Assembly: GCA_977020255.1 (NCBI GenBank)
Contig: CDROCS010000253.1
Location: 4,278,001 to 4,342,000, forward strand
Source: Obrimoposthia wandeli
Lineage: Eukaryota
Reading direction: 5' to 3'
DNA: 64,000 nt
The first letter of the stretch is position 1, and the number at the start of each line of letters is the position of its first letter. Made by a program: the position numbers and the translations under genes. Of the stretch, positions 2,647-22,147 are shown piece after piece. A model generated the notes under the pieces. That model had not been told where the DNA came from. It worked only from the letters and a program-made list of their open reading frames with translations, and searched no databases.

Positions 2647-3450
2647 TTAATAAGTTAGCTGTTCAATAGCAACTGCGCAGGCTCTTAGTGCTGGTAAAAT
2701 AGTCGTTAATACTTGCTGTTTCGTTGTTTGCGAAATATGCGTACTGATACTTAACGCACCAAGAACTTTTCCGGCTTGATTTCGTACCGGTACCGAAATA
2801 GAGGTTAGACCTAGCTCTAATTCTTGTTCTACTAAAGAATAACCTTGCTGATTTACTTGCGCAATTTCTGCTGTTAACTCCACTTTGTTAGTGAGCGTGA
2901 AGGCAGTATATTGCTCCACTCGACAGCTTGTTAAAAAGTCATTTAATGCTTTACCTGTCATATCGGCCAACAGAACACGACCTAAAGATGTCGCAAAGGC
3001 AGGTAAGCGAGTACCCACATTCAAACTAACAGACATAATTCGTTTAGTGGTAGCAACACGTCCTACATAGACAACATCTTCACCTTCTAATACTGCTGCC
3101 GAGCATGACTCATTGAGTTGCTCAACTAACTGCTGCATTAAAGGTTTTGCGTTCTGCCAAACATCTTGAGAAGCGAGGTAAGCAAAGCCTAAATTAAGTA
3201 TTTTTACCGTTAACGAAAACTGCTTCCCCTCTTGTTTGGCATAACCTTCACTTACTAAAGTCAGTAAAAAACGCCTTGCTGCTGCTCGCGTATAACCTGT
3301 GGTAGTAGCAACTTCAGATAGTGTCATCGTCGGTCTGTGCTGATCAAAGGCCTGAATAACCATCAAACCCTTAAGTAAGGATTGTACGATTTCGGATGAT
3401 TTGATCATAACTTGATCATCATCATGTTTTCCTTGTTCTTGCTTTGACAT
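2647..3450 (-). CDS. pcaR: IclR-family regulator, PcaR/PobR type
   Basis: VQSLLKGLMVIQAF, TLSEVA..TGYTRAAARRFLLTL, RLPAFATSLGRVLLA; divergent from pcaIJ. Confidence 0.88.
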   Translation of the reverse strand: MSKQEQGKHDDDQVMIKSSEIVQSLLKGLMVIQAFDQHRPTMTLSEVATTTGYTRAAARRFLLTLVSEGYAKQEGKQFSLTVKILNLGFAYLASQDVWQNAKPLMQQLVEQLNESCSAAVLEGEDVVYVGRVATTKRIMSVSLNVGTRLPAFATSLGRVLLADMTGKALNDFLTSCRVEQYTAFTLTNKVELTAEIAQVNQQGYSLVEQELELGLTSISVPVRNQAGKVLGALSISTHISQTTKQQVLTTILPALRACAVAIEQLTY

Positions 3451-3474
3451 TGAATTATCTCAAACCTACAATAA

Positions 3475-3510
3475 TGTTCGATATACTAACAAGTGTTCGC
3501 ATTGCGCACA
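3475..3510. promoter_or_regulatory. Two tandem PcaR/PobR-type operator boxes
   Basis: TGTTCGATATACTAACA (3475-3491) and TGTTCGCATTGCGCACA (3494-3510) resemble the GTTCGATAATCGCAC consensus, in the pcaR-pcaI divergent gap. Confidence 0.7.
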
Positions 3511-3561
3511 ACTTGTTTCGGTTAGCCCTAATTAACACGAATATAATATGAGTAGTGCAAA

Positions 3562-4347
3562 ATGATAGATAAAAGAGTGGCAAGTTGCGCCAGTGCAGTT
3601 ACCGATATAAAAGATGGCGATACCGTAATGATTGGTGGTTTTGGTGAAGCAGGCAGTCCGATAGAGTTAATTCACGCATTAATAGATCATGGAGCAAAAA
3701 ACTTAACCGTCATTAATAACAATACCGGTAGTGGTCGAGTAGGTTTAGCTGCCCTGATTGAAAATGGTCAAGTGGCTAAAATGATCTGCTCCTATCCGCG
3801 CACTGCTAATTCTCTCGTTTTTCCAGAACTGTATCGCAGTGGTAAAATTGAACTAGAGCTTGTTCCACAAGGTACGTTAGCCGAACGCATTCGGGCTGGT
3901 GGCGCTGGAATTCCTGCTTTTTTCACTAAAACGTCAGTCGGAACGCCGCTTGCAGAGGGCAAAGAACGCCGAAATTTTGAGGGCGATGACTATGTTATGG
4001 AACGTAGCCTAAAGGCTGATTTCGCTCTTATCAAAGCCAAGCAAGCTGACCGATACGGTAATTTAACCTATAACAAAACTGCCCGTAACTTTGCACCAAT
4101 TATGGCCATGGCGGCAACAAGAACCTTAGTGCAAGTCAATGAAATGGTTGAATTAGGGGATCTTGATCCCGAAAACGTCATTACCCCCGGCATATTCGTT
4201 AATGCGTTAATTGAGGTAACACAACCACAACAAGAGTCTCAACTGGTGAAAAACGGCATTACCTATCCAGAAGTAAAAGCACCTGCAACAAAGACCTCCA
4301 CAATAAATAGCCTAGAAAAAATAAACTCAGGAGCAACACAAGCATGA
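3562..4347 (+). CDS. pcaI: 3-oxoadipate CoA-transferase subunit A
   Basis: MIDKRV, DGDTVMIGGFGEAGSP, NNTGSG, LVPQGTLAERIRAGGAGIPAF; ATGA overlap with subunit B. Confidence 0.88.
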   Translation: MIDKRVASCASAVTDIKDGDTVMIGGFGEAGSPIELIHALIDHGAKNLTVINNNTGSGRVGLAALIENGQVAKMICSYPRTANSLVFPELYRSGKIELELVPQGTLAERIRAGGAGIPAFFTKTSVGTPLAEGKERRNFEGDDYVMERSLKADFALIKAKQADRYGNLTYNKTARNFAPIMAMAATRTLVQVNEMVELGDLDPENVITPGIFVNALIEVTQPQQESQLVKNGITYPEVKAPATKTSTINSLEKINSGATQA

Positions 4348-5087
4348 GCCAAGTAGCAAAAAAACAAAACCTCGAGGCAACAACTCAAATTGGCTGGAAC
4401 CGAGAGCAAATGGCACAACGCTGTGCACAAGATATTGAAGATGGCAGCTATGTAAACCTTGGCATAGGTATTCCTGAAAAAGTCGCTCAATATGTTCCTG
4501 AGGGTAGAGAGGTTATCTACCACACAGAAAATGGTTTACTTGGCATGGGTAATTCTCCCTCTGATGAAGAGCTTGATGCTGATTTAATCAATGCCGGTAA
4601 AAAAGCGGTAACGGCAATTCCTGGTGCCTCATATTTTCATCACGGTGACAGCTTTGCCATGATCCGCGGCAATCATATAGATGTTTGTGTACTCGGGGCA
4701 ATGCAAGTCTCAATGAAAGGAGATTTAGCCAATTGGTCGACCGGCGCTGTTGATGCGATTCCTGCCGTAGGTGGTGCTATGGACTTAGTGGCTGGCGTTA
4801 AAACCATCTACATTATTACCCAACATACCACTAAAACAGGGGCAGCTAAAATATTGCCTGAATGTACTTTCCCGCTCACCGGACAGAAGGTTGTTAATCG
4901 AATTTATAGTGATTTATGTGTGATTGATGTCACCGAAAACGGTTTAGTGCTTATGGAGCTAGCGCCCGGCATTAGCTTTGACTATGTACAAGAACGCACA
5001 GGGGTAGCACTGCTTAATGGACTCTCAACAAAAAGTAACATAGCAGATAATCATATCGTTAACACCACACATAAGGCGCAGCAGTAA
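4344..5087 (+). CDS. pcaJ: 3-oxoadipate CoA-transferase subunit B
   Basis: YVNLGIGIP, catalytic HTENG, GAMQVS, VGGAMDL. Confidence 0.88.
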   Translation: MSQVAKKQNLEATTQIGWNREQMAQRCAQDIEDGSYVNLGIGIPEKVAQYVPEGREVIYHTENGLLGMGNSPSDEELDADLINAGKKAVTAIPGASYFHHGDSFAMIRGNHIDVCVLGAMQVSMKGDLANWSTGAVDAIPAVGGAMDLVAGVKTIYIITQHTTKTGAAKILPECTFPLTGQKVVNRIYSDLCVIDVTENGLVLMELAPGISFDYVQERTGVALLNGLSTKSNIADNHIVNTTHKAQQ

Positions 5088-6397
5088 TGGTAAATAAAAG
5101 CGAAAAACTATTTAATAAAGCACTGAAGGTATTACCTGGCGGTGTTAGTCGTAATACTATTTTTAGAAAGCCCTATCCATTTTACGCTGATAAAGGTGAA
5201 GGCTGTTATGTTACCGATGTAGAAGGTATAACTCGCATCGACTTTGCTAACAACATGGCCTCATTGATTCATGGTCACGCCTACCCTGCAATTGTTGAAG
5301 CCGTATCAGCACAGCTAGCTAAAGGCAGTTGTTTTACCATGGCAACCGAAGCTGAAGTTAACTATGCTCAGCTGTTATGCGACCGAGTACCGAGCTTTGA
5401 TAAAATTAGATTTGTTAACTCGGGCACCGAAGCGGTAATGGCAATGTTAAAAGCATCGCGTGCCTATACAGGTAAAGCTAAAATAGCCAAAGTTGAAGGT
5501 GCTTACCATGGCGCTTACGATTATGCTGAAGTAAGCCAAACAGCAAACCCAAGTAACTGGGGAGAACTTGATAAGCCAAATAGCATCCCAGTAGCCGAAG
5601 GTACACCACCAAAAGCATTAGAAGATGTTGTGGTAATACCTTTTAATGATCCTGAACGAGCGATTAAGATTTTAGATCAACATAAAGATGAAATCGCCTG
5701 TATTTTAGTTGATTTATTACCTCATCGAGTTGGCTTAATTCCCGCCAGCAATGCTTTTATTAATGCGCTACACCAGTGGACCCGTGATAATAAATCACTG
5801 TTAGTATTCGATGAAGTTATTACCTTTAGAACTAATTACAGTGGTGCTCAACAAAACTATGATGTTACGCCAGACTTAACCGCGCTGGGAAAAGTTATTG
5901 GTGGTGGTTTCCCCGCAGGTGCCTTAGCAGGTTGTGATAAGGTGATGAAAGTACTCGACCCAACGGAGCCAAAAGTTTTATTACCTCACTCAGGCACTTT
6001 TTCGGCCAATCCAATTACTATGACAGCAGGTTTAGCCGCCATGAAAGACTTTGATCAAGCAGCAGTTATCAAGCTTAATCAGCTTGCCAGTTATGCTAGA
6101 AAAGCGATTACTCAGGCCATAGAGGAGGTAGGTATCAATGCTTGTGTAACAGGTGCCGGCAGTATGTTTAGAATACATCTAAAAGCACAGCCACCTAAAA
6201 ACTACCGTGAAAGCTATGTTGATAAAAAAGAAAGCCAATTAATCACTAAATTACTCGATCATTTATTCGATAATGGCATTATGATGATAAATACTTGCAC
6301 AGCAGCGTTATCAACCGCGATGAGTGAAAAAGAAATAGATCATTTAGTCTGTGCACTAAAAGATGGCTTTGAACTAATAAAGCCAGAAATGGCATAA
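5087..6397 (+). CDS. Class III PLP aminotransferase, GSA-aminomutase-like fold, probably a beta-amino-acid transaminase
   Basis: LPGGVSR, FVNSGTEA, GAYHG, FDEVITF, ALGKVIGGGFPAG (PLP Lys), HSGTFSANP; lacks HemL SPVRAF; TAATG overlap with pcaJ. Confidence 0.85.
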   Translation: MVNKSEKLFNKALKVLPGGVSRNTIFRKPYPFYADKGEGCYVTDVEGITRIDFANNMASLIHGHAYPAIVEAVSAQLAKGSCFTMATEAEVNYAQLLCDRVPSFDKIRFVNSGTEAVMAMLKASRAYTGKAKIAKVEGAYHGAYDYAEVSQTANPSNWGELDKPNSIPVAEGTPPKALEDVVVIPFNDPERAIKILDQHKDEIACILVDLLPHRVGLIPASNAFINALHQWTRDNKSLLVFDEVITFRTNYSGAQQNYDVTPDLTALGKVIGGGFPAGALAGCDKVMKVLDPTEPKVLLPHSGTFSANPITMTAGLAAMKDFDQAAVIKLNQLASYARKAITQAIEEVGINACVTGAGSMFRIHLKAQPPKNYRESYVDKKESQLITKLLDHLFDNGIMMINTCTAALSTAMSEKEIDHLVCALKDGFELIKPEMA

Positions 6398-6413
6398 CAG
6401 GCTTTGTTATGCC
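6391..6413 (+). other. Stem-loop spanning the aminotransferase stop codon, no U-tract
   Basis: GGCATAACA-ggctt-TGTTATGCC, 9-bp stem. Confidence 0.45.
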
Positions 6414-6581
6414 TGTACGGTAAATGACCTGATCATGCTGGCTGCTTTATAAGCCGCAACTATACAAAAATCACATGAAGATGTTTAGATGTAGGTATTA
6501 GACAATGGATTTCCGATCAAACACGTCGGGAATGACTTAAATTATAAGATGTAGGAGTGAAACCTACCAAGGAAATAGAAA

Positions 6582-7799
6582 ATGAGAGACGTATACATCT
6601 GTGATGGTATTCGCACGCCGATTGGAAAATATGCAGGCGCTTTATCATCTGTTCGCGCTGATGACTTAGCAGCAATTCCACTTAAAGCATTAAAAGACAG
6701 AAACCCAACATTAGATTTAACCCAAGTAGACGATGTTATTTTAGGCTGTGCCAACCAAGCAGGTGAAGACAATCGTAACGTCTCTCGTATGGCGCTTTTG
6801 TTAGCGGGTTACCCTACCCAAGTAGCAGGTTGTACCATTAATCGTTTATGTGGCTCAGGTATGAATGCCATTGCAATAGCGACAAATGCTATTAAAGCTG
6901 GCGAGGCTGAAATGTTAATTGCTGGCGGTGTTGAAAGCATGTCGCGCGCACCTATGGTAATGGCGAAAGCTGAAAGCGCTTTTTCACGTAACGCTGAATT
7001 ATTCGATACCACGTTAGGCTGGCGTTTTGTTAATCAAAAATTACATACCGCCTATGGCACAGATTCTATGCCTGAAACCGCAGAGAATGTTGCTGAGCAA
7101 TTTGGTATTAGCCGTGAAGCTCAAGATAAATTCGCTTTTGCTAGTCAAAGTAAAGCCAAAGCAGCACAAGATGATGGTCGATTTGCCGAAGAAATAGTCC
7201 CTGTGATTATCCCGCAGCGCCGTGGTGATGATATTGTTGTTGAAAAAGATGAACACTTACGTCTTAGCTCGTTAGAAAAGCTAGCAACTCTCAAAGCACC
7301 TTTTAGAGAGGGCGGCTCAGTCACCGCAGGTAATACCTCTGGCGTAAATGATGGCGCTGCAGCCGTTATTCTTGCCAGCAAAGAAGCGGCCTTAGCCAAT
7401 GGCTTAACGCCAAAAGCGAGAATACTTGGCTCTGCTGTTATTGGTGTTACCCCTGAAATTATGGGTATTGGCCCAGCGCCAGCGAGTGCCAAACTGCTAA
7501 AACGTTTAGGTCTGAGCATTGATGATATGGACATTATTGAGTTCAACGAAGCTTTTGCTGCACAGGCGCTTGCCAGTGCCCGTGAATTGGGTCTTGAAGA
7601 TGATGACGTACGTTTAAACCCACAAGGTGGTGCCATTGCTCTGGGTCATCCATTAGGCATGAGTGGCACACGTTTATTAATCACAGCAACGAAACAGCTT
7701 GAGCGCAGTGGTAAACGTTATGCACTCTGCGCTATGTGTGTTGGTGTTGGCCAAGGCATTGCTATGGTCATTGAGCGATATAGTGAGAATGTACAATAA
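6582..7799 (+). CDS. pcaF: 3-oxoadipyl-CoA thiolase
   Basis: GCANQAGEDNRNVSRM, NRLCGSG, GGVESMSRAP, NEAFA, GAIALGHPLG, MCVGVGQG. Confidence 0.92.
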   Translation: MRDVYICDGIRTPIGKYAGALSSVRADDLAAIPLKALKDRNPTLDLTQVDDVILGCANQAGEDNRNVSRMALLLAGYPTQVAGCTINRLCGSGMNAIAIATNAIKAGEAEMLIAGGVESMSRAPMVMAKAESAFSRNAELFDTTLGWRFVNQKLHTAYGTDSMPETAENVAEQFGISREAQDKFAFASQSKAKAAQDDGRFAEEIVPVIIPQRRGDDIVVEKDEHLRLSSLEKLATLKAPFREGGSVTAGNTSGVNDGAAAVILASKEAALANGLTPKARILGSAVIGVTPEIMGIGPAPASAKLLKRLGLSIDDMDIIEFNEAFAAQALASARELGLEDDDVRLNPQGGAIALGHPLGMSGTRLLITATKQLERSGKRYALCAMCVGVGQGIAMVIERYSENVQ

Positions 7800-7851
7800 A
7801 AACTATCGTGAGAAGCGTTAACAAAACGATGGTGAAACTATTTAAATAACT

Positions 7852-7889
7852 AAAAAGGGAGACTAATTATTAATTAGCCTCCCTTTTTT
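7852..7889. terminator. Bidirectional intrinsic terminator (pcaF / nudC)
   Basis: AAAAAGGGAG-ACTAATT..AATTAGC-CTCCCTTTTTT. Confidence 0.8.
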
Positions 7890-7947
7890 GAGCCAATAAA
7901 AGATTTTATCTTTTATTAACTGCTAGGTTGTAGCTTTTAGCCTGCGA

Positions 7948-8994
7948 CTAATACTGCCCTATTTCCTTATTCTTCCATGCCGTGATCAAGTAGGACGAAA
8001 TAGAATCACCACTACTCAATTTATATTGTGGTTTATCAGCGCTATCGTCCTCTGCAATGACTGAGCTATTAACACCAAAGTTGACCAGTTGCTCACGCGA
8101 AAACCACCTAGCGTCTTCTAAATCATCTTGGCTAATATCAATTTTTTCTGACGTCGCAACGGCAGTAAAACCCAACATTACTGAGGCTGGAAATGGCCAA
8201 GGTTGCGAGGCAATATAATGTGGCTTTTCAACATGTACTGCAGTTTCTTCAACGACCTCTCTAATTACCGCTTGTTCGAGCGTTTCACCAGGATCAACAA
8301 AACCGGCTAGCGTTGAATACATTCCCTCAGCCCAACTCGCTTGTCTACCTAATAAACAACGCGGAATACCATCGGCAAACATTTTTTCTACCAACATGAT
8401 CACCGCAGGATCGGTACGCGGAAAGCTCATATTTCGACAGTCAGAGCAACGCCTCGCATGTCCTGCTTCAACTGAACGATTAGCATGTCCACATTGACCG
8501 CAAAATTGATGGCTTATATGCCAATGAACCAAGCCTTTAGCTAACGCTAATATTGAAGCATCAATAGCTGATAAATTAGCGGTGACTTTTCTAAGCCCTT
8601 GCCATTGGCCCATTTCACTTAACGCTTCCTGTGTAGAAAAGCGTAGTTTATTAAAGTCGATAGCAAAAATTGAAATAGCAGTTGGTTTATGGATATTACT
8701 GTTACCAACAGTGCTGGTATCTAAACTGTTATTGCCTAATTTCTGTAGACCTAAATCCCCTTTCCCCAAATTTCCTTTACCTAGATAAATACAACTATCA
8801 ATATTCACTGTCGGTACTTGTGATTTACTAAGATAAATGGGCGAAAGGACTTCTTCTTTATCAAAAAGGCACTGGCCATCATTAATAACGCAAAACAAGC
8901 TATCTTCATGGGTAAACTCAGCAGCTAACCAGCGCTTATTTTTTCGTTGGTTAGTACCTCTATCTAGCGGCATATTGCCATACGCTAATGTCAT
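7948..8994 (-). CDS. nudC: NAD(+) diphosphatase / NAD-capped RNA hydrolase
   Basis: Zn finger CGQCG..CSDC, FPRTDPAVI, Nudix box GFVDPGETLEQAVIREVVEET, SQPWPFP. Confidence 0.92.
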   Translation of the reverse strand: MTLAYGNMPLDRGTNQRKNKRWLAAEFTHEDSLFCVINDGQCLFDKEEVLSPIYLSKSQVPTVNIDSCIYLGKGNLGKGDLGLQKLGNNSLDTSTVGNSNIHKPTAISIFAIDFNKLRFSTQEALSEMGQWQGLRKVTANLSAIDASILALAKGLVHWHISHQFCGQCGHANRSVEAGHARRCSDCRNMSFPRTDPAVIMLVEKMFADGIPRCLLGRQASWAEGMYSTLAGFVDPGETLEQAVIREVVEETAVHVEKPHYIASQPWPFPASVMLGFTAVATSEKIDISQDDLEDARWFSREQLVNFGVNSSVIAEDDSADKPQYKLSSGDSISSYLITAWKNKEIGQY

Positions 8995-9347
8995 TATGTG
9001 CTTTCTTCCTTAAGTGCTTGTGCCCATTGAGAAGACCAGCTTCCTAATGGAGAGATTATCTCAAATAAGTCAATACCTTGGGATGATAATTGATAACCAG
9101 CTTCTTGGCTTTCAATAAGCTGTAATGTCTTGAGTTCTTTTAGTCGAGTATTTAACAAGGTAGGCGAGATTTTCTCACAGCGCTGTTGCAACTCTCTAAA
9201 CGTTGCCGGGCCACTATGTAAATTCCAAATAATACCTAACGCCCATGTTCGACCAAGTAAATCGAGTAATGCCATAATAGGCTTACCGGTTTTAGAGCCG
9301 CGCACTTGTGAGCCGGGTAGTGGTATTGTCATAGTGATTGCTACCAT
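8994..9347 (-). CDS. HxlR-family winged-helix regulator
   Basis: GKPIMALLDLLGRTW, FRELQ, ISPTLLNTRLKEL, YQLS..G; TAATG coupling to nudC. Confidence 0.85.
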   Translation of the reverse strand: MVAITMTIPLPGSQVRGSKTGKPIMALLDLLGRTWALGIIWNLHSGPATFRELQQRCEKISPTLLNTRLKELKTLQLIESQEAGYQLSSQGIDLFEIISPLGSWSSQWAQALKEEST

Positions 9348-9407
9348 GTTAAAAACATCATGCTACAATATTTGTAGCACAGTTACTATAATAAACAAAA
9401 AAATGAG

Positions 9408-11375: not shown

Positions 11376-11417
11376 TAATTGCCATTGTTAAGTTATTGGA
11401 ATAAATAGTTATCATCA

Positions 11418-12023
11418 CTAAAGACTTTCCAATTCCTCTCCCCATAATATCTCAGTTAAAAGCAGTGTTTTCAGTGCACACATTAAAACTACATTGGCTA
11501 ACTCAGGAGCGTTTTGTGCTATTTTCAAAACACCTTTATTTGCTGTAACACCATCATCACTTAACAGTTGCTTCAGTTCTTGATAGTTTTTACCAATAAA
11601 AATATTCTTAAAATAAATTCTTTCTGCAATTTTCTTTTTAGGACTTCTACAGCGTTGAAAAGCAAAATTTCTTATTCTTAAGTCTTTATCTATTGCCCAA
11701 ACTATTTCAACTAATCCCCAATCACTTTGTTCTGATCTAACATGAACATAGCCTAGTGACTGCTTACCCTTCATCGCGATATACAAGGTATGTTGGCCTA
11801 GCTCACTAAAATGTAAGTCATTACGGGGTAATGCAATTTTTACTTGAGCTCGAGTATCGTCATCTACCGTTTTAACAATAGAGAGTTGATTAGTTTTTTG
11901 CGGATAGAGCTGCGCTATTTGCGCGACGGGATCACGTAAAGAGCAGTAAGCAATTGCGTTCACATTGTCAGAAAGCAATATCAGAATTAATATCCACATT
12001 AATGAAATAAAGCATATTTTCAT
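11418..12023 (-). CDS. Exported hypothetical protein, possible degenerate FMN-binding-type fold
   Basis: Signal peptide; GYVHVRSEQSDWGLVEIVWAIDKDLRIRNFAFQRCR; three mature-region Cys; tightly packed between porin and kinase genes. Confidence 0.65.
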   Translation of the reverse strand: MKICFISLMWILILILLSDNVNAIAYCSLRDPVAQIAQLYPQKTNQLSIVKTVDDDTRAQVKIALPRNDLHFSELGQHTLYIAMKGKQSLGYVHVRSEQSDWGLVEIVWAIDKDLRIRNFAFQRCRSPKKKIAERIYFKNIFIGKNYQELKQLLSDDGVTANKGVLKIAQNAPELANVVLMCALKTLLLTEILWGEELESL

Positions 12024-12024
12024 A

Positions 12025-13002
12025 TCAGTACCTAACCCTTATTTGTATTCTAGCCAACTGCTGTTTTTCACCCTCTGATGGACTGTTAAGTTGCTTACCA
12101 CCTGACATACTTATCACTAACAGGGGATTAAATTGATAACTAAAACCAATATTTACTTGCGTATCTGCACTTGGCTGGTTTTCTCTATCTCTGATAATTA
12201 ACTGGCCATATAGCGTAAGCTGCTCATTTATTGAGGTTTTATTAAATTCAAGTAAGCTATATTTTTCTTTTTCCCTGCCTTGTGATTGCTTATTATCTTC
12301 ACCCAGCGCTAACTCACCTAAGAATCCCCATGTCCCCCAATAATATTGCCAATCTAAGGCTAACCTTTTTCGTGAAACATCATCAATTTTTCCCTCAAAA
12401 AATGATAAACCAACCACAAAATCTAAGTGGATCAATGAGCCTATTCGACCTGTAACAGCATAAGAGCCATCAACCGACCTAGCCTTGTCTTTACCACCCA
12501 AGGTATAACTCACACTGTATTCAACTTGGCTTAGCACTTTATTAAGGCCAAGACCCCAATCGAGCTTTGCTCCTAAGTTTTTCCCATGATAATAATCGAG
12601 TAAGCGACCGTTGGTATCAATACTCTCTTCTAAGCCAAAGGGTAAAGTAAAATGTCCTATTCGAATATTAGGGAGCCAATTGGGGCCAGCAGTATAGTTA
12701 AGATGAGCTTCTCGAATGATAAATTCACTATCATCTTTAGAGGTAAATAAAAAAGGTACCGGAAGGTGATTTGATAGCTTAGTATAATAAACCTGCCCTA
12801 CCCCATAACCTACATCGCCTGTCGATACAGTAAAAACCTTATGAGTGTCTAAGCCGAAGACATAAATACGACTGGTGTTATCTAATGCCCCATTGTGACT
12901 TAATCGAGCACTAGCATCTAAACTCCACCTGAGGCTTTGAGTAAAGTCGGCATAACAAGGCACAGAAAGAAGCGCTAAAAAACTGAAATACATATATCTC
13001 AT
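12025..13002 (-). CDS. Outer-membrane beta-barrel (porin-like) protein
   Basis: Signal peptide, IRIGHFTLPFGLEE (phosphate-porin-like), alternating beta strands, C-terminal IQIRVRY. Confidence 0.7.
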   Translation of the reverse strand: MRYMYFSFLALLSVPCYADFTQSLRWSLDASARLSHNGALDNTSRIYVFGLDTHKVFTVSTGDVGYGVGQVYYTKLSNHLPVPFLFTSKDDSEFIIREAHLNYTAGPNWLPNIRIGHFTLPFGLEESIDTNGRLLDYYHGKNLGAKLDWGLGLNKVLSQVEYSVSYTLGGKDKARSVDGSYAVTGRIGSLIHLDFVVGLSFFEGKIDDVSRKRLALDWQYYWGTWGFLGELALGEDNKQSQGREKEKYSLLEFNKTSINEQLTLYGQLIIRDRENQPSADTQVNIGFSYQFNPLLVISMSGGKQLNSPSEGEKQQLARIQIRVRY

Positions 13003-13352: not shown

Positions 13353-13378
13353 AAAAAAGCCAGCATTAAGCTGGCTTC
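13353..13378 (-). terminator. Intrinsic terminator downstream of yceI
   Basis: AAAAAAGCCAGC-attaa-GCTGGCTT, U-tract on minus strand. Confidence 0.75.
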
Positions 13379-13415
13379 AAGTGGTTTAGGCAAGGAGGGT
13401 AAAATAAATACTAAA

Positions 13416-14015: not shown

Positions 14016-14101
14016 GTGAGATTCCTTGTCTATTCTCTAATTAAGAGGAATGAAGCGTTAATTAATAATAAATAAATTAACTGTTTTGATTCTTTGTTTA
14101 A

Positions 14102-14671
14102 CTACTTTCTAGGTAATACTCTTAGCATCCGAATTAAAGTATTATTTTTATTAAAAAAATGGTGTTTAAGTGCTGCAAGTGTATGGCCAGCACTGAGTAA
14201 AATTAAAGTCCATGCTAAAAACTCATGAATATTGCCGGCAATATCTTCTTGGTTAGCAAAATTAATTGGCAATGACGGCACTGATATTAAGCCAAAAACA
14301 TCTATAGCTCTACCATCTGCCGTTGAAATTAAGTAACCACTTATCATCAAAAAAACCATCAAACCATAAAGTACTAAGTGAGCATAATGTGCTGCTTTTA
14401 CTTCAATTTTTCTAGCAGATTTATCGGCACTTTTTGGCGTAACATTAACTACACGCCAGACGATTCTTAACATCAAAGCAACGAACAGGGTCATACCAAT
14501 ATTTTTATGTAAATCTAACGAGCCTTTATACCAAGCGTCGTAATAAGTTAGTTCAACCATATAGAGCCCTAAGCCGAATAAGGAAAATATACTTATCGCC
14601 ATTAGCCAATGAAATACTATAGTAATAAGCCCATAGCTGTTCTCTGTATTCTTTAACATGTTACTACTCAT
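14102..14671 (-). CDS. Cytochrome b561 (YceJ-like); likely start at 14659
   Basis: YGLITIVFHWL, LHKNIG, HYAHLVLY, HEFLAW, GHTLAALKHHF heme-ligand His pattern; upstream of yceI. Confidence 0.9.
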   Translation of the reverse strand: MSSNMLKNTENSYGLITIVFHWLMAISIFSLFGLGLYMVELTYYDAWYKGSLDLHKNIGMTLFVALMLRIVWRVVNVTPKSADKSARKIEVKAAHYAHLVLYGLMVFLMISGYLISTADGRAIDVFGLISVPSLPINFANQEDIAGNIHEFLAWTLILLSAGHTLAALKHHFFNKNNTLIRMLRVLPRK

Positions 14672-14848
14672 CTTATTATCTCTTTCTTTTGAGTCAGCGT
14701 ATTTGTTAATGCACTAACAACATCCTTATCAAATTTCTAAGGCTACTATAGCGAATTTAAATCTATTAAAAAATAGTAATAAATGCGAAACTATTGTGCA
14801 AATACGCACAACTAATTGCATTTTTATATAATCTAAATAGTAGGATAG

Positions 14849-15727
14849 ATGATGAAAGATATTTCTTGGGATGATTATAAAATAGCCTACCAAGTTGCTA
14901 TTGATGGTAGCTTAAGCCAAGCAGGTATATCTCTCAGCATAAATCACACCACCGTATTAAGGCGCATAAACCAATTAGAGCAAGCACTTGAAGTAAAGCT
15001 ATTTATTCGTCACCAGCGTGGTTATAAACTTACCGATGCGGGCTGTGTATTAATGGATGAAATGCCAGAAATGCTGGCAAAGTTTTCTAGCTTAGAAAAT
15101 AAACTACAAAATGTTGAGGGGGATATTAGTGGTGAATTTAGAATAACTACTGTTAGTTCGTTTTCACCTGTTATAACACCAACATTAAAAGCGTTTAGAG
15201 CGAAGTATCCAAAAATTCGCCTCAAGCTTATTTCTACTGATGATATTGTACCGCTTGACTCAGGTGCTGCGCATGTATCCTTACGAGCAGGGCCAAGTCC
15301 TGTTGGCGTTGATCTTGTCGTTAAAAATCTAACCCGATTAACAACTGCTTATTATGCAACACAAGGTTATATCGATGAATTTGGTCAGCCCAACAGTATC
15401 AGTGAATTTAACGAACACCAATGGGTATTACCTACCCCGGAAAAGTATCGTATTCCTTTTGTTAATTACATTGTTGATAAAATAGATAAAAATAAAATAG
15501 TTTTTCAAAGCAACCACTTCCCTGATATTACTGAAGCGGTTATTGCAGGTATGGGCATTGGCCCTTTAGCTGAATACCAAGCAGATTTAAATCCATCAAT
15601 GATTAAGATTGATTTAGACATCCCGAAAAATAATGAGTCTATCTGGTTTGTTTATCATAAAGATTTAAAACATAGTGCTCGTATCCAATGTTTTTATCAA
15701 TTTTTAAAAGCAGCACTGTTAGATTAA
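14849..15727 (+). CDS. LysR-family regulator
   Basis: SWDDYK..GSLSQA..INHTTVLRRINQLE..KLFIRHQRGYKLTDAG. Confidence 0.92.
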   Translation: MMKDISWDDYKIAYQVAIDGSLSQAGISLSINHTTVLRRINQLEQALEVKLFIRHQRGYKLTDAGCVLMDEMPEMLAKFSSLENKLQNVEGDISGEFRITTVSSFSPVITPTLKAFRAKYPKIRLKLISTDDIVPLDSGAAHVSLRAGPSPVGVDLVVKNLTRLTTAYYATQGYIDEFGQPNSISEFNEHQWVLPTPEKYRIPFVNYIVDKIDKNKIVFQSNHFPDITEAVIAGMGIGPLAEYQADLNPSMIKIDLDIPKNNESIWFVYHKDLKHSARIQCFYQFLKAALLD

Positions 15728-15993
15728 ACGGTAATTCAGTGTTCCCTTTTAAATCAGCTAACGTGATGAGGAGCAACCATTTCGAAAGAGTAGCTTTTTC
15801 ATTAATCATTCTTTATATTAATAAAAAGTTAAAAAAATGTTTACTGCTGATTAAGTTTTTGATGCTAAAGTCAATCCATAACAATGACTTTGATATAACG
15901 GCTACAGGCAACGCATGTTTAAATTAGGTGACATTTATATAGCTAACTTGACCTTTTCGTTGCCATACACTAAGGATTATTGGTGAGTTTTTT

Positions 15994-18114
15994 ATGTTTA
16001 AACTCAATATAAAAACGCGTATTTTAACGTTTGTCGTACTTTTTCAGATTATTGCTTACTGTACCATTCAGTTATTCAATAACTTCAACTACAAAAAGGA
16101 GTTAACTCGATTAAAAAATAATGAAATTCAGCAAACATTTATAGCTACCACTGAAAAAATAAATAATTTAATCCTATTACTCGAAAGAAATGTCACCAAT
16201 TTAGCTATTTCCTCAGAACACCTTTACTCGCTAAGGCAAGAAAAACAGCTTACCGTTGAGCAATTAACCGTTGCAATGAAGCGATTACTGACCGAAAATT
16301 TCACCTCGTCCCCTGAAGCCATTGGCGGTGGTATATGGTTTGAACCTTATCTTATTGATCCGTCAATGAAATATTTTGGGCCTTATTCTTTTCAAGGTAA
16401 AAATGGGGTCGAGTTTAGCTGGCAGCTAAATACTGATATATATGATTATCATAACCAAGATTGGTATACCATGGCTTCAGCGAGTAACTGGGGCCAAGGA
16501 AATAAAAGCACTAGAGCTCTATTTTGGACACCTCCGTATATTGATACTGCCGGTACCTATTCATTAATGATGACAGTAGATGCTGTGATGTTTGATCAAC
16601 AAAAAATAATGATCGGCATGACTACCTTAGACTGGTCTTTAACTGAGCTAACCTCATTATTATCAAAGGTTCGAATATCTGAAAATTCTTATCCTTTTTT
16701 TATTCACAAAGCATCAAAGCAGTTCCTCAGTTACCCCAAAGACCCTACATTAGTAATGCAACAAGCCAATCAGTTCAATTGGGGCAAACAAGTACTCAGT
16801 AACAATAAGATAAACGAGTTAACTACCCTCAATAACATCTTCATTGATGGCATTAACTACAATGTCTACTTTCATGGTACTGATGGTGGTTTTATTTTTG
16901 GCTCTTTAAGCCCGGTTTCTGATTTAGAAAAAGACATAAATAGCATTGCCAACATAACCTTACTTGTTGGAACAAGTATTTGCCTATTCTTTATTGTGCT
17001 ACTGATTGTTTTGATGCATATACTGTTTTCCCCCTTTGATAAGGTGCTTTCCTTAATTAAAAACTCAATTACTCATCGTTCTGACAACAAAAAATTTGTT
17101 GAAATTCAGCCTATAACATACTCAGAAGATAACGAGTTTACCCCTATAGTGCATGCACTTGATGAGGTATATAAGCAGGTAAGTAGTTATATTGAACAAA
17201 TAACGGTAAACAATGCGCATCTGGTACAGTCAACAGCAGAAATTGATACTTTAAATAACAAACTTGAAGAAAAAGTACTTTTAAGAACCCAGCAGCTCGA
17301 AGCAAAAACACAGCAAGCGCTAGACTCACTGACCCAATTAAAAAACACCCAGCAACAACTGATTGAGCAAGAAAAACATGCTGCATTAGGACGTTTAGTG
17401 GCCGGCGTTGCGCATGAAATAAATACGCCTTTGGGTATCAGTATCACTGCTGCTTCTTTCATGAAAGATATAAGCGAAGAGATTTTTCATCAAATTGAAA
17501 ATGGTATACTTAAAAAATCTGAATTTACTAAAAAACATCAACAACTTGTAGAAAGTGCGAAGCTATTGGAAAATAATCTTAAACGAACCTCTGATTTGGT
17601 GACGAGTTTTAAACAAGTTGCCGTTGATCAATCATCAGAAGAGTTTAAACAGTTTAATTTATTTGATTATATAACCAAAGTTTCCCGATCATTACAGCCA
17701 AGAATAGAGCAGGCAAAGCATAAACTCGTCATAAATTGCCCCGACACTGATATTGAAGTGTATTCAATTCCTGGTGTTATTATTCAAGTGATCACCAATT
17801 TAGTCGAAAACTCACTTATTCATGCCTTTACCAATGCTGACTCAGGTTTAATCACAATTCACTTGTTGAAGCATGAAAAACATATAGATCTAATTATTTC
17901 GGATAATGGCAATGGCATGCCCATTCAGGTAGTTGACTCTATTTTTGATCCCTTTTTCACCACATCAAGACGTAATGGAGCAACAGGGTTAGGCATGCAC
18001 ATTGTTTATAACCTCATCACGCAACAACTTCTTGGTATGGTGAGCTGTAAAAGCGACCTAGGTGAAGGAACAAAAATCACAATGTCCTTGCCTACTCAAA
18101 GCAAGTTAGAGTGA
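15994..18114 (+). CDS. dCache-domain sensor histidine kinase
   Basis: TM, Cache-like GGGIWFEPY/YHNQDWY/PYID, TM, LGRLVAGVAHEINTPLG, NLVENSLIHAF, DNGNG, PFFTT, GLGM. Confidence 0.88.
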   Translation: MFKLNIKTRILTFVVLFQIIAYCTIQLFNNFNYKKELTRLKNNEIQQTFIATTEKINNLILLLERNVTNLAISSEHLYSLRQEKQLTVEQLTVAMKRLLTENFTSSPEAIGGGIWFEPYLIDPSMKYFGPYSFQGKNGVEFSWQLNTDIYDYHNQDWYTMASASNWGQGNKSTRALFWTPPYIDTAGTYSLMMTVDAVMFDQQKIMIGMTTLDWSLTELTSLLSKVRISENSYPFFIHKASKQFLSYPKDPTLVMQQANQFNWGKQVLSNNKINELTTLNNIFIDGINYNVYFHGTDGGFIFGSLSPVSDLEKDINSIANITLLVGTSICLFFIVLLIVLMHILFSPFDKVLSLIKNSITHRSDNKKFVEIQPITYSEDNEFTPIVHALDEVYKQVSSYIEQITVNNAHLVQSTAEIDTLNNKLEEKVLLRTQQLEAKTQQALDSLTQLKNTQQQLIEQEKHAALGRLVAGVAHEINTPLGISITAASFMKDISEEIFHQIENGILKKSEFTKKHQQLVESAKLLENNLKRTSDLVTSFKQVAVDQSSEEFKQFNLFDYITKVSRSLQPRIEQAKHKLVINCPDTDIEVYSIPGVIIQVITNLVENSLIHAFTNADSGLITIHLLKHEKHIDLIISDNGNGMPIQVVDSIFDPFFTTSRRNGATGLGMHIVYNLITQQLLGMVSCKSDLGEGTKITMSLPTQSKLE

Positions 18115-18136
18115 CACAGATTATTATTTTGTTCCT

Positions 18137-19333
18137 TTAAATTGCTGCCATTTTTTTACTTGTATTAACAAACTGGCTTGCCGCTAAAGAGAGTAACGCG
18201 ATAAATGCACCCGCATAAAACACCAACGAATGATCATATAACCAAATTAGGCCAAAGGTCGCTGGAATAACAACGGCGGCAATATGATTAATACTAAAAC
18301 TGACTCCTGCACTTGAAGCAATATCTTTTGGATCCGCTATTTTTTGAAAATAAGTTTTCAACGCAATGGCCATAGCAAAAAACAAATGGTCAATCACATA
18401 AAGCACCGCAGCTGCATTGGCCGATTCAACTAATGCATAACCAACAAAAATAGTAATTAAACCTAGATACTCTAAAGTCAGCGCTTTACGCTCGCCAACT
18501 TTAGCAATCCAAAGGCCTATTTTAGGCGCTAAAAAGAAGTTAATTACATGATTAATCATATACAGCACTGTGATTTGTTGAACACTGTAACCAAACTTTT
18601 CTACCATCAAAAAACCAGCGAAAACAACAAATATCTGTCGACGAGCTCCCGCTAAAAAGGTCAACAAGTAATACAAACTATAACGTTTTCTTAATATGAT
18701 TTTTTTGTGTTGTGCATGTTCCATAGGGAATTTAGGCATAGCAAACGCCAACCATAGCGTTAGTAGTAAACCACTTAAACCAAAAAACAAATACATCACT
18801 TGGTAGCTGGCAGAAAAAATACTAAAGCCCAACCAAATTAGGGCATAACAAGTTAATGAAGCGGCAGACTTTATTGACATTAATTGACCAAGCTTTGCTG
18901 CTGCTTCATCTTTTTTGAACCACTGTAGGCTTAATGAGGTATTTAAGGTTTCGTAATAATGAAAGCCGATAGACATTAACACCGTTGTTGCATACAGCCC
19001 GTAAATACTAGGGAACAACCCTGTAATCGCCACACCAATGGATAACAAACACAAAGAAATTAAAGCAAATACTTGTTCGGTAAATACCAACAACACAAAA
19101 ATTGCAGTGAATGCTAAGAAGCCAGGAATTTCTCTTAAAGACTGCAATATGCCTATTTCAGCACCAGTAAAAGCAGCTTGCTCAATAACAAAATTATTGA
19201 GCATAGCCATCCAACCGGCAAAGGTAATTGACGTAACCATGCTGGCAATAGCTAAGAAAAAAAAAGGACTATGCCATTTATTATTTTGTGCGGTTAAAAG
19301 TGTCGACGCATTTTCCGTACTTACTTTATCCAT
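18137..19333 (-). CDS. MFS transporter
   Basis: 12 hydrophobic segments, LQSLREIPGFLAF, ARRQIFVVFAGF. Confidence 0.85.
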   Translation of the reverse strand: MDKVSTENASTLLTAQNNKWHSPFFFLAIASMVTSITFAGWMAMLNNFVIEQAAFTGAEIGILQSLREIPGFLAFTAIFVLLVFTEQVFALISLCLLSIGVAITGLFPSIYGLYATTVLMSIGFHYYETLNTSLSLQWFKKDEAAAKLGQLMSIKSAASLTCYALIWLGFSIFSASYQVMYLFFGLSGLLLTLWLAFAMPKFPMEHAQHKKIILRKRYSLYYLLTFLAGARRQIFVVFAGFLMVEKFGYSVQQITVLYMINHVINFFLAPKIGLWIAKVGERKALTLEYLGLITIFVGYALVESANAAAVLYVIDHLFFAMAIALKTYFQKIADPKDIASSAGVSFSINHIAAVVIPATFGLIWLYDHSLVFYAGAFIALLSLAASQFVNTSKKMAAI

Positions 19334-19499
19334 ACTGATCCCTGCTCTAAATACTAATACTGTGTTACTGGCAATTGGTTTTAAATTAGGTACTAAGTGC
19401 CAAAGAAATAATAGCTCTCCAAGTTATCTTCTGAAGATCAGCTTGTGTCGCTAGAGTGGTCATTATATGATGATTTTAACATGACCAATAGCAACAATT

Positions 19500-20306
19500 A
19501 TGACAGTTAGTTTATCAATTCAGACAAAATCTACTTGGGATCAACAACCCCCTAGTCGACACTATGATGTTCTACCTCGGTCTGTAGTGCCGTTGTCTAA
19601 AGAATTTAAAGCGATGACACAAATAACTAATCACAAACATACTTGGTCACAGCTGGCCTATTCTTGTTCAGGAATCATGCATATTGAAACTGACTCAGGC
19701 ATTTTTGTTATTCCTCCTGAACAGGCGCTGTGGATTCCTCCAAACGTAAAACATCAACATTTTTGTAAAAATAAGGTCAGTTACCGTAGCCTACATATAG
19801 ATGCCAAGTTAAGTGAAATATTAGGTAATAAAGTACGACCATTGTCAGTTGATCCCTTATTGAAGTCACTGATATTAGAAATATCAAATTGGCCTACAGA
19901 TTACCCTGAAACGGACCAGACACAGCGTTTTATTCTAGTGTTATTAGACCGCTTAGCGATAGCAAAAAGCAACGAACTTTTTATGCCTACAATTCAAGAT
20001 AAACGACTATTACCTATCATTGAAACTCTTAATCAAGAGCCCGCGAATAAATTAACAGTAGAACAATGGGCACTTAAAGTAGGTGCATCAAGTCGCACCT
20101 TAAATAGATTATTTAATCAAAATTACGGTATGGGCTTTAGCCGATGGAAACAGAAACTGAGAATATTAAAGTCATTAGAATTACTTAATAGCAACTCGCG
20201 AATTGTAGATATTGCCTTTGAGTTAGGTTATGAATCAACGTCGGCATTTATTACCGCTTTTAAAAAACACTTAGGTTGCTCACCTAAAAAATACCTTGCT
20301 AAGTAG
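19500..20306 (+). CDS. AraC-family regulator (cupin + double HTH)
   Basis: HKHTWSQL, PPEQALWIPPNVKH, SSRTLNRLF, FELGYESTSAFITAFKK. Confidence 0.92.
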   Translation: MTVSLSIQTKSTWDQQPPSRHYDVLPRSVVPLSKEFKAMTQITNHKHTWSQLAYSCSGIMHIETDSGIFVIPPEQALWIPPNVKHQHFCKNKVSYRSLHIDAKLSEILGNKVRPLSVDPLLKSLILEISNWPTDYPETDQTQRFILVLLDRLAIAKSNELFMPTIQDKRLLPIIETLNQEPANKLTVEQWALKVGASSRTLNRLFNQNYGMGFSRWKQKLRILKSLELLNSNSRIVDIAFELGYESTSAFITAFKKHLGCSPKKYLAK

Positions 20307-20367
20307 TAATTGAATAGATGAAAGGCCTATTACAATGACCTTTAATTAAGATGAGTTGAGATAATGC

Positions 20368-20421
20368 AGTGGAACGGGTATATACCCGTTCCACTTGATG
20401 GTGTAGGATTCAGCGGGTATA
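20368..20421. repeat. ERIC-like end junction: 28-bp palindrome plus 41-bp internally deleted element
   Basis: AGTGGAACGGGTAT|ATACCCGTTCCACT, then TATACCCG...CGGGTATA (20381-20421) similar to left ends at 23956 and 61898. Confidence 0.7.
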
Positions 20422-20425
20422 TAAA

Positions 20426-22147
20426 CTACTGCGTTAATCTATTCGTTAACGCTGCCGCTAAATCATGCTCAATAGTGGCAAGTTCATCTTCAAAGAAGAA
20501 CTTATCGGTATCAAACGGTTTAAGTAATTTCACATCGTTGGTGGTTTCATCGTATTTAGCTAAAAACACTTTGTCCATCCACTTCATGTTGCGCCCTTCG
20601 GTGAACATCAAAGCAAAGGCTCGTTCTCCGCCAACATCACATTCTCCCATAATCGAGATTTTACCCGCAGAAGTGGTCATAGACAGATGACGAGATGGGC
20701 GGTTAATCGATGGTAATTCACGGTATATTTTATCAAATATTTGACTAACGACACTAAGCGGCGCAGTGAAATAATGATGTTCACCGGTTGGTCTTGCGCA
20801 ATACATAGAATGAAAACTGATTAACATAGTCCCTAAAATATTAGCTAAATCTATCCAATTTTGTGCGCTGCGATCTATATCGATTGAGCCATCTTTATGC
20901 TCAAATAAACTGATATGATTCATCATCGGACTTTGACTACGAATAACCACACCGTGACGTTGCAAGCGACGAATAGCGGCAATAGTGGTTGGGTTTAATA
21001 ATTCTCGCGGTGTAGAGAAATGCGCCATCCATGCCAGTTGAATACCATTTTCATGCATTTTATCAAATACGGCTAACATCTTGTCGTACTTACGACTTAA
21101 AATCATTTCCGGTTGGAAGGTTAACGCACGTGTAGCAAGGCGAACCGTTTTAATGTGTAATAACTCTCGGTCTTCCATTAACGGCGTAATATATTGCTCA
21201 AAGCGACTCGCGGGCATGTAACCACCATCGCCACCGGTAATAAGCATATCAGTGACTTCTTTATGTACCTTTAAGTAACGATGAATTTGATCTATTTCTT
21301 TTTGGATAAACATATCTTCATCACCACGAACTTGCGCATGACGGAAACAATAAGTACAAAATGAAAAACAGTTTTGGGTAGTTTTATCAAAAATTAACTG
21401 ACACTGAGGGTATTTATGCTGACTACCATCAAGAAACTCGATTTCACCCTGCTCGTTTTCAAACCAAGGTTTATTAAGTTGTTGGTTTCCATCGTGAGGA
21501 CTGGTTTTTTCTTGGTAATCAGTAACAATGATTTTCTTCTCTTGTAAGTTAGCGACTAAGTATTCAGCCACGGTAACTTTGTTAATCATATTAGGTTGTG
21601 GCATCACTAACTGAAAAACAGAATCTTCATAAAAGTTAGTCCAGTCAATGCTATTTAAACTGTGCTTAGTCGCTAAAAATCGGTAAACCTCAATAAAGAG
21701 TTCCCGCTCTTCAATATCACCAATATCAATATTATTAGCTTCAAGTATTTCTACCACGTGGCGAAAGCCTGAAAGCCCAGTGTATTGATCTTTCTCATCG
21801 AACATATGGGCTGCTTTATCTAGTAAGCCCGAATGCTGTGGGTAAGACGCATGTAAGCGGCTGAGTAAACCCGGTGACAGTAGCTTTTCATCTTTAATCG
21901 TTTTACGAACGTCATCACTGTAGTGATATACATCCATCATATCGTTAATATCAATTTCGCTGACATCACTAATACCGTTTTTTAGACCATGGATATTACC
22001 AGTTAGTACTGAGCTATAAGACTGACAAGCACTTGAGTCAAGCTCTTTTGTATTAGTTTTATTTGGATCAACTATAGCGACATCAATATACTTTACTTTA
22101 GTTGTTGAATTTTTACTCGCTGAAACTTTATATGCGGAGTTGGTCAT
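20426..22147 (-). CDS. KamA-family radical-SAM/PLP amino-acid 2,3-aminomutase
   Basis: QHKYP, CFSFCTYCFR (CxxxCxxC plus Arg), LITGGD, AHFSTPREL, RSQSPMM, SAGKI (PLP Lys). Confidence 0.85.
   Translation of the reverse strand: MTNSAYKVSASKNSTTKVKYIDVAIVDPNKTNTKELDSSACQSYSSVLTGNIHGLKNGISDVSEIDINDMMDVYHYSDDVRKTIKDEKLLSPGLLSRLHASYPQHSGLLDKAAHMFDEKDQYTGLSGFRHVVEILEANNIDIGDIEERELFIEVYRFLATKHSLNSIDWTNFYEDSVFQLVMPQPNMINKVTVAEYLVANLQEKKIIVTDYQEKTSPHDGNQQLNKPWFENEQGEIEFLDGSQHKYPQCQLIFDKTTQNCFSFCTYCFRHAQVRGDEDMFIQKEIDQIHRYLKVHKEVTDMLITGGDGGYMPASRFEQYITPLMEDRELLHIKTVRLATRALTFQPEMILSRKYDKMLAVFDKMHENGIQLAWMAHFSTPRELLNPTTIAAIRRLQRHGVVIRSQSPMMNHISLFEHKDGSIDIDRSAQNWIDLANILGTMLISFHSMYCARPTGEHHYFTAPLSVVSQIFDKIYRELPSINRPSRHLSMTTSAGKISIMGECDVGGERAFALMFTEGRNMKWMDKVFLAKYDETTNDVKLLKPFDTDKFFFEDELATIEHDLAAALTNRLTQ

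Follow-up and report, generated by a model that had tools for sequence, protein, structure and literature searches.

A five-gene module predicted to catabolize L-2-aminoadipate, a product of lysine or pipecolate oxidation, is encoded in two separate pieces in the window analyzed here, a 64,000-nucleotide stretch of contig CDROCS010000253.1 from the Obrimoposthia wandeli assembly. The module combines a KamA-like radical S-adenosylmethionine (SAM) protein with the two subunits of a CoA-transferase, a class III aminotransferase, and a PcaF-type thiolase (Table 1). In the proposed route, the KamA-like enzyme would shift the amino group of 2-aminoadipate from C2 to C3, giving 3-aminoadipate, and the aminotransferase would then remove the β-amino group to give 3-oxoadipate. 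The PcaIJ-type CoA-transferase, assigned at family level, would make 3-oxoadipyl-CoA, probably from succinyl-CoA, and the thiolase, assigned at equivalog level, would release succinyl-CoA and acetyl-CoA; the succinyl-CoA from thiolysis could serve as the transferase donor, so closing a cycle. A probability of about 0.65 is given to the reading that the module is a widespread, horizontally mobile, O2-independent path from lysine- or pipecolate-derived L-2-aminoadipate through 3-aminoadipate, and that it contains the first known 2-aminoadipate 2,3-aminomutase. Taken by itself, the route from 2-aminoadipate through 3-aminoadipate and 3-oxoadipate (or its CoA ester) to succinyl-CoA and acetyl-CoA is held with slightly greater confidence. 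The net route needs neither O2 nor an oxidative decarboxylation, which fits the presence of the module in many anaerobes.

The association of the five genes is clearest outside the Colwelliaceae. One genome per species, from 185,579 species, was scanned with a profile of the KamA-like protein, which revealed 402 stretches encoding a relative; the best 80 of these were retrieved, comprising 69 loci from non-Colwelliaceae species and 11 from Colwellia and Litorilituus, and the window proteins were mapped onto them by tblastn. The complete string aminomutase-CoA-transferase A-CoA-transferase B-aminotransferase-thiolase was contiguous and co-directional, with the aminomutase-like gene first, at 47 of the 69 non-Colwelliaceae loci. 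Ten further loci held all but the thiolase, with the contig breaking off at some of them; in three others, all alphaproteobacterial, the KamA-like gene was followed directly by the aminotransferase and no other module genes, and one had the reverse order, aminotransferase-aminomutase. At the rest, no more than 1.3 kb separated the KamA-like gene from the end of the contig, and every non-Colwelliaceae locus with enough sequence had an aminotransferase or CoA-transferase gene adjacent. The gap from the aminomutase-like gene to that of CoA-transferase A had a median of 67 bp, and orthologues of CoA-transferase A (69–83% identity) lay directly downstream of the aminomutase-like gene at 64 other species loci; orthologues of the aminotransferase (57–71% identity) lay inside the module at 58.

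The carriers span the Gamma-, Alpha-, and Betaproteobacteria, Desulfuromonadales, SAR324, Bacteroidota, Cloacimonadota, Sumerlaeia, Fibrobacteraceae, and Krumholzibacteriia, and the aminotransferase and KamA-like families are tight, at 60–70% identity across phyla. Several homologues of the two proteins came from contigs of identical length, and two of these contigs showed a single operon in which a divergent LysR gene is followed by genes for the KamA-like protein, both CoA-transferase subunits (A, then B), the class III aminotransferase, and the thiolase. A reciprocal check from two independently chosen aminotransferase homologues returned the same operon, with a gene for a 478–537-residue protein lacking any Pfam match upstream. 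The more distant KamA-like proteins P0244 and P0251 had unrelated neighborhoods without module context.

The split arrangement was found only in the Colwelliaceae, where all 11 Colwellia and Litorilituus loci resemble the Colwellia-like window. Best database hits assign the genome to Colwellia. The earlier note on this DNA had described a pcaR-pcaIJ-aminotransferase-pcaF cluster lacking ring-cleavage genes, placed a KamA-family gene 12.6 kb downstream, and joined the two loci into one pathway, naming the unrelated genes between them as the weak point. The gene order is borne out by the open reading frame (ORF) map and family scans, which also revealed a 4-nt overlap between the subunit A and subunit B genes and a 1-nt overlap of the aminotransferase start with the subunit B stop. 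Annotation of the whole window yielded no ring-cleavage or upper β-ketoadipate genes (pcaHG/BCD, catABC), nor were any recurrent among the 80 related loci. From the end of the thiolase gene to the aminomutase-like gene, whose product matches KamA-family models weakly, the distance is 12,627 bp; the intervening genes (Nudix hydrolase, HxlR regulator, two histidine kinases, YceI, cytochrome b561, LysR, MFS, and AraC) look unrelated to the module. The functional link between the two loci is strongly supported by the contiguous, co-directional cluster seen outside the Colwelliaceae in many phyla. Because the genes form one contiguous operon elsewhere, their separation in the window is a lineage-specific rearrangement of a stable module, and it is regarded as nearly certain that the five genes work together as a single functional module. 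In the Colwelliaceae, the ancestral operon would have been broken, with a LysR regulator staying beside the aminomutase gene and a PcaR-type regulator being gained by the four lower genes.

The 12.6 kb of unrelated genes and the separate regulators, together with the classical tie of PcaR-type regulators to aromatic catabolism, could instead mean that the two Colwellia loci are unlinked, with pcaIJ-aminotransferase-pcaF serving the catabolism of aromatic compounds or of 3-oxoadipate from another source, or that the module makes a β-amino acid. Either is very improbable, given that the embedded aminotransferase is orthologous (at the 57–71% identity noted above) to the one in the aminomutase operon elsewhere, that the window holds no ring-cleavage genes, and that four further Colwelliaceae genomes have both halves on a single contig: Colwellia sp. 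12G3, Litorilituus lipolyticus, C. psychrerythraea ND2E (locus L004), and C. demingiae (L005). At L004 and L005 the thiolase and aminotransferase genes are 6.5–7.7 kb from the aminomutase-like gene. A biosynthetic role is also at odds with the catabolic neighbors of the module, which include dehydrogenases and uptake systems of the ATP-binding cassette (ABC) type.

Table 1. Module genes, regulators, and a putative transporter gene in the window, with the family matches of their products
Feature	Position	Strand	Family match or motif
IclR-type regulator, PcaR/PcaU/PobR family, divergent from operon	2647-3450	-	TIGR02431, 302.2 bits vs 284.75 cut-off
3-Oxoacid CoA-transferase subunit A (PcaI/ScoA family)	3562-4347	+	TIGR02429, 354.2 bits vs 128.5 cut-off
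3-Oxoacid CoA-transferase subunit B (PcaJ/ScoB family)	4344-5087	+	TIGR02428, 305.2 bits vs 243.55 cut-off
Class III HemL-like aminotransferase, proposed 3-aminoadipate β-transaminase	5087-6397	+	PF00202, 192 bits
3-Oxoadipyl-CoA thiolase (PcaF type)	6582-7799	+	TIGR02430 equivalog, 668.8 bits vs 597; NF006551, 680.3 vs 605
Major facilitator superfamily (MFS) transporter	18137-19333	-	PF07690
AraC regulator	19500-20306	+	
KamA-like radical-SAM/pyridoxal phosphate (PLP) protein, 573 residues, proposed 2-aminoadipate 2,3-aminomutase	20426-22147	-	CxxxCxxC; TIGR00238, 71.1 bits vs 199.2
LysR-type regulator, divergent from aminomutase-like gene	22489-23469	+	GcvA-like, 257 bits, under 288 cut-off

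The last step of the route is indicated by the thiolase. All 27 module thiolases tested from other taxa matched the PcaF models TIGR02430/NF006551 (E ≤ 1e-180), and the catalytic residues Cys90, His356, and Cys386 are invariant. These PcaF-level scores support 3-oxoadipyl-CoA as the thiolase substrate, as had been supposed when the cluster was first noticed; thiolysis of this compound yields succinyl-CoA and acetyl-CoA. Subunit B of the CoA-transferase carries the catalytic-Glu motif YHTENG, and both window subunits pass the cut-offs of their models, which cover PcaIJ and ScoAB alike. The module has in common with the lower β-ketoadipate pathway its CoA-transferase subunits, a PcaF-equivalog thiolase, a PcaR-family regulator (in Colwellia), and the predicted products. 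It differs in lacking the protocatechuate or catechol ring-cleavage genes, in having an aminotransferase gene between pcaJ and pcaF, and in being headed in most taxa by a radical-SAM aminomutase gene and controlled by LysR.

Evidence on the input comes from neighboring genes. All flanking ORFs of the retrieved loci were clustered to find recurrent neighbors, of which the most frequent besides regulators was an aldehyde dehydrogenase, present at 10 loci from SAR324, Motiliproteus, Desulfuromonadales, Desulfuromusa, Geobacter, Anderseniella, and other Alpha-, Gamma-, and Deltaproteobacteria. All ten enzymes matched NF050084, the L-piperideine-6-carboxylate (P6C) dehydrogenase equivalog, with E ≤ 1e-200, and a representative scored individually reached 794.9 bits against a cut-off of 730. 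The product of P6C dehydrogenase is 2-aminoadipate. The gene was found ahead of the aminomutase gene, behind that of the thiolase or that of the aminotransferase, or on the opposite strand, and this varied placement argues that selection has repeatedly favored the pairing, as opposed to one arrangement having been inherited. Five of the ten loci additionally held a saccharopine-dehydrogenase-family gene, the best solved relative of its product being 3abi, which we take to be the L-lysine 6-dehydrogenase of P. horikoshii. An AmaA-like FAD (pipecolate) oxidase was encoded at two (458 bits, under the 600 cut-off), and several had a polar amino-acid ABC system with a weakly Lys/Arg/Orn-like binding protein. 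No neighbor pointing to glutamate, β-lysine, or aromatic substrates was found among the clustered flanking genes, and a second type of aldehyde dehydrogenase, a γ-aminobutyrate-transaminase-like protein, a 4HBT thioesterase, and EthD, BCCT, Usp, and MCP neighbors were heterogeneous or uninformative on substrate. The suggestion in the earlier note that 2-aminoadipate is the starting compound is thereby strengthened, the support lying in the repeated and differently arranged NF050084-grade neighbors.

With the pipecolate/2-aminoadipate branch of lysine catabolism (AmaA, AmaB), these loci share the steps leading to 2-aminoadipate, namely P6C dehydrogenase, a pipecolate-oxidase-like protein, and a lysine-6-dehydrogenase-like protein. 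In the known routes onward, 2-aminoadipate is transaminated at C2 to 2-oxoadipate, which is converted to glutaryl-CoA or, by the O2-dependent HglS, to 2-hydroxyglutarate. In contrast, the route proposed here would move the amino group to C3 and split the carbon skeleton by thiolysis.

Other genes were observed beside the module in individual carriers. In a SAR324 metagenome-assembled genome (MAG), the contig end truncates a class III aminotransferase-like gene (L013:2-2889) that stands immediately upstream of the P6C dehydrogenase gene and matches the PRK06148 C-terminal domain (689 bits against a cut-off of 1128); it may encode another feeder into 2-aminoadipate semialdehyde, and its cluster has two further members, both aminotransferases of different types. 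In a gammaproteobacterial MAG, the module is closely followed by a D-amino-acid dehydrogenase gene (L067:15048-16355; NF001933, 645 bits against 383), which may link it to the catabolism of D-lysine or other D-amino acids. Motiliproteus-like and some other carriers (L017, L021, L022, L024, L043, L072, L001, and a JGI contig) have extra module neighbors, namely a 4HBT thioesterase gene immediately ahead of the module, a class I/II aminotransferase gene immediately behind that of the thiolase, and genes for an EthD-like protein, a BCCT transporter, and a DHO_dh/Fer4 oxidoreductase.

The proposed aminomutase is related to lysine 2,3-aminomutase (LAM; PDB 2a5h), with which it shares the CxxxCxxC motif, an arginine aligned with Arg134, a GGD motif, the PLP lysine, and the fold, at ∼18% identity. 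Its cluster motif, CFSFCTYC (Cys260, Cys264, and Cys267), is invariant in 20 of 20 family members. The AlphaFold2 model (pLDDT 88.5, pTM 0.87) gave LAM as the best Foldseek match, with an E value of 7e-14, a target-normalized TM score of 0.65, and 414–426 aligned columns, and E values for other radical-SAM folds were about 1e-4. Scores against the equivalog models that define specificity were 57.5 bits for AblA (cut-off 525), 53 for glutamate aminomutase (TIGR04368; 650), 59 for arginine aminomutase (600), and 43 for EpmB (369). The protein falls below all curated cut-offs and is therefore a KamA-like outlier, outside every characterized specificity group. Unlike LAM, it has an extra N-terminal helical region of ∼100 residues, as judged from the number of residues ahead of the cluster motif, and its context is an operon of CoA-transferase, transaminase, and thiolase genes and not lysine fermentation, elongation factor P modification, or osmolyte synthesis, as for the KamA family. 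Residues 1–54 are predicted to be disordered (pLDDT < 50), are not conserved, and are absent outside the Colwelliaceae; the true start may therefore lie downstream of the annotated ATG, and conserved sequence begins near Ile65/Met70.

A sequence search of the single protein against the PDB reached only residues 239–412, which were aligned by HMMER to LAM residues 106–265, placing Arg269 on LAM Arg134, beside the cluster cysteines. A 42-sequence profile extended the alignment to LAM residue 323, with Arg452 falling on Asp293, and an ungapped extension of the profile alignment put Lys496 on Lys337, Pro484 on Pro325, and Ser489 on Asp330. By this extension, position 489 is either Ser or Thr in the family, and Lys496 hardly varies among 60 KamA-like sequences. 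In LAM, Arg134 is taken here to be the carboxylate binder, Asp293 and Asp330 to bind the ε-ammonium group of lysine, and Lys337 to be the PLP lysine. A charge reversal at the Asp293 position fits a substrate with an acidic side chain. The pocket had earlier been thought to look suited to a dicarboxylate, and this argument is upheld only in part: the alignment of Arg452 with LAM Asp293 speaks for it, yet Arg452 is common to a wider uncharacterized KamA-like clade with unrelated gene contexts. Residues specific to the module family include Arg274, His270, and Glu456-His457-His458.

These residues also bear on the possibility that the enzyme is a lysine (or arginine) 2,3-aminomutase and that β-lysine is degraded through 6-amino-3-oxohexanoate. 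Homologues are automatically annotated as “L-lysine 2,3-aminomutase” and the neighboring genes are lysine-related. Nevertheless, both LAM aspartates for the ε-ammonium group are replaced, by Arg452 and Ser489, and the LAM, AblA, arginine-aminomutase, and EpmB equivalogs score only 43–59 bits, far under their cut-offs. Moreover, an adjoining P6C dehydrogenase would be pointless for a β-lysine route, and 4-aminobutyryl-CoA would be a thiolase product ill-suited to a PcaF-type enzyme. Such an activity is thus highly improbable.

The Asp-to-Arg signature invites comparison with glutamate 2,3-aminomutase, in which Lys and Asn presumably replace the LAM aspartates; the Asp-to-Lys change is the one it resembles. 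Glutamate would then be converted to the osmolyte β-glutamate and to 3-oxoglutarate, which would be degraded either through 3-oxoglutaryl-CoA to malonyl-CoA and acetyl-CoA or by decarboxylation to acetoacetate, followed by ScoAB and a thiolase. The carriers are marine and sediment taxa, some modules have a BCCT transporter nearby, and the CoA-transferase models would admit ScoAB as readily as PcaIJ. This explanation is nonetheless improbable in view of the TIGR04368 score of 53 bits against 650, the identification of 27 of 27 thiolases as PcaF equivalogs and not acetoacetyl-CoA thiolases, and the fact that the only pathway-informative neighbors make 2-aminoadipate.

Beyond the module family, the profile search, which found 1,560 cluster representatives at E ≤ 0.001, revealed a large uncharacterized KamA-like clade (P0244 and P0251–P0364; L082) with 21–35% identity to the window protein. 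Its proteins lie below the Pfam and NCBIfam cut-offs, many have Arg at the LAM Asp293 position, and their gene contexts are unrelated; all 41 of the more distant relatives scanned were uncharacterized KamA-like proteins. This clade may hold further aminomutase specificities.

The aminotransferase is HemL-like, with 341.8 bits for the HemL equivalog (cut-off 527.3), and lies under every HemL cut-off; its PLP lysine, Lys269, is conserved. Its best solved relative is 6k8h, the ω-transaminase StoTA of Sphaerobacter thermophilus (402 bits), which belongs to the same HemL-like subgroup and takes free β-amino acids to β-keto acids; the aromatic β-transaminases 2yku and 4ao9 are also among the closest known systems. 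StoTA deaminates free aromatic, branched, and aliphatic β-amino acids and a γ-amino acid, with pyruvate as the acceptor (PMC10589169). Whereas StoTA has been studied as a biocatalyst on monocarboxylic β- and γ-amino acids, a dicarboxylic β-amino acid is the predicted substrate of the window enzyme.

A second relevant HemL-like enzyme is Kat, an acyl-CoA β-transaminase paired with a thiolase in a variant lysine fermentation that follows the same logic, in which an aminomutase supplies a β-amino compound to a HemL-like class III transaminase and then a thiolase (Perret et al. 2011, PMC3149608). Kat was recovered from metagenome data by means of the published forward primer, both primer-encoded termini being matched (L085:2741-3985). 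In digester metagenome contigs (L085:1170-3985; L089:175-2900), the Kat gene is preceded by an ORF of 398 residues, which is presumed to be the thiolase of PMC3149608. Kat (CLOAM0809) homologues share at least 60% identity (PMC3149608), and the window aminotransferase, at only 27% identity and 152 bits, was rejected as a Kat orthologue.

Kat acting on 3-aminobutyryl-CoA together with a thiolase (PMC3149608) sets a precedent for another order of reactions on the same substrate, in which the CoA-transferase would first make 3-aminoadipyl-CoA and the aminotransferase would act on the thioester to give 3-oxoadipyl-CoA. The gene order aminomutase-CoA-transferase-aminotransferase-thiolase would then be collinear with the reactions, and a free β-keto acid would be avoided. 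The 402-bit relationship to a free-β-amino-acid transaminase, set against the distance from Kat, favors transamination of the free acid, and the transferase belongs to the 3-oxoacid family. A further point against a thioester intermediate is that Colwellia uses a PcaR-type regulator, a family that typically senses 3-oxoadipate. Formation of the CoA ester ahead of transamination is therefore considered unlikely, although distinctly less so than the other alternatives discussed, and transamination of free 3-aminoadipate is preferred.

Control by a PcaR-family regulator of the lower genes in Colwellia is consistent with a 3-oxoadipate intermediate. The regulator passes the cut-off of TIGR02431, the model for PcaR/PcaU/PobR regulators, and appears to be specific to the Colwelliaceae, where it would control the lower part of the divided module; outside this family, a LysR regulator adjoins the intact module in its place, a divergent LysR gene being the commonest neighbor there. 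In the Colwelliaceae, LysR adjoins the aminomutase-like gene at 10 of 11 loci, the remaining locus (L012) beginning inside the gene. Between the PcaR-type regulator gene and the operon (3451–3561), a repeat tool called no PcaR-operator-like repeats; two GTTCG-containing elements in this region, GTTCGATATACTAAC and GTTCGCATTGCGCAC, neither of them called by the tool, recall what we take to be the PcaR operator repeat of Pseudomonas putida. An MFS gene is found near the aminomutase-like gene at seven Colwellia loci (L002–L007 and L012) and an AraC gene at six (L002–L007), and a different, unrelated MFS gene precedes the module in one ENA contig. The window MFS protein could possibly serve substrate uptake, and it is uncertain whether it and the AraC regulator belong to the system.

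Elsewhere in the window, genes for a haem-NO-binding (H-NOX) protein and then a histidine kinase were observed (24182–25673 and 25966–26670), adjoined by a truncated IS4-family transposase ORF. Two neighboring minus-strand ORFs of 201 and 325 residues (11418–13002) had no Pfam or NCBIfam match. No lysine-to-aminoadipate genes were found elsewhere in the 64 kb, and a lysine or other riboswitch was not detected among Rfam matches in positions 1–26000.

Several observations weigh against the proposed 2-aminoadipate route. A 2-aminoadipate-forming dehydrogenase lies within 10 kb at only 10 of the 69 loci, and no P6C dehydrogenase was seen in the Colwellia window or the Colwellia flanks. The aminomutase-like protein misses all curated KamA-family cut-offs by far (71.1 bits against 199.2 for TIGR00238), and its match to LAM Asp330 and Lys337 depends on carrying the HMMER alignment onward without gaps. 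Arg452 also occurs outside the family, in 24 of 40 more distantly related KamA-like proteins, and the CoA-transferase model does not separate PcaIJ from ScoAB. We infer the enzyme chemistry itself; the route is well supported by comparative genomics. 3-Aminoadipate is without a reported biological role in the searchable literature, where searches on it and on an aminoadipate aminomutase met only metabolomics, meteorite, or review mentions. The statement that no such pathway was known agrees with the full-text literature searched, which yielded no description of the pathway or the enzyme, most subscription journals being outside its coverage. The system is probably a pathway variant built from known kinds of enzyme, with a new aminomutase specificity.

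Lysine is a major amino acid of marine and sediment organic matter and, to our knowledge, the consumption of 2-aminoadipate without O2-dependent or oxidative-decarboxylation steps is poorly defined. If the proposed route is correct, the radical-SAM aminomutases would gain a new activity, 2-aminoadipate 2,3-aminomutase, 3-aminoadipate would gain a physiological role, and the HemL-like β-transaminases would gain a physiological substrate. The lower β-ketoadipate pathway would likewise acquire a second, non-aromatic feed. The new branch of lysine degradation would be one that pathway predictors currently miss because homologues carry the labels “hypothetical protein,” “lysine 2,3-aminomutase,” “glutamate-1-semialdehyde aminomutase,” or “aspartate aminotransferase family protein.” Shewanella, Photobacterium, Pseudoalteromonas, and Colwellia are culturable carriers of the module in which the hypothesis is directly testable, and the enzymes could serve the synthesis of chiral β-amino dicarboxylic acids and adipate-related bioproduction.

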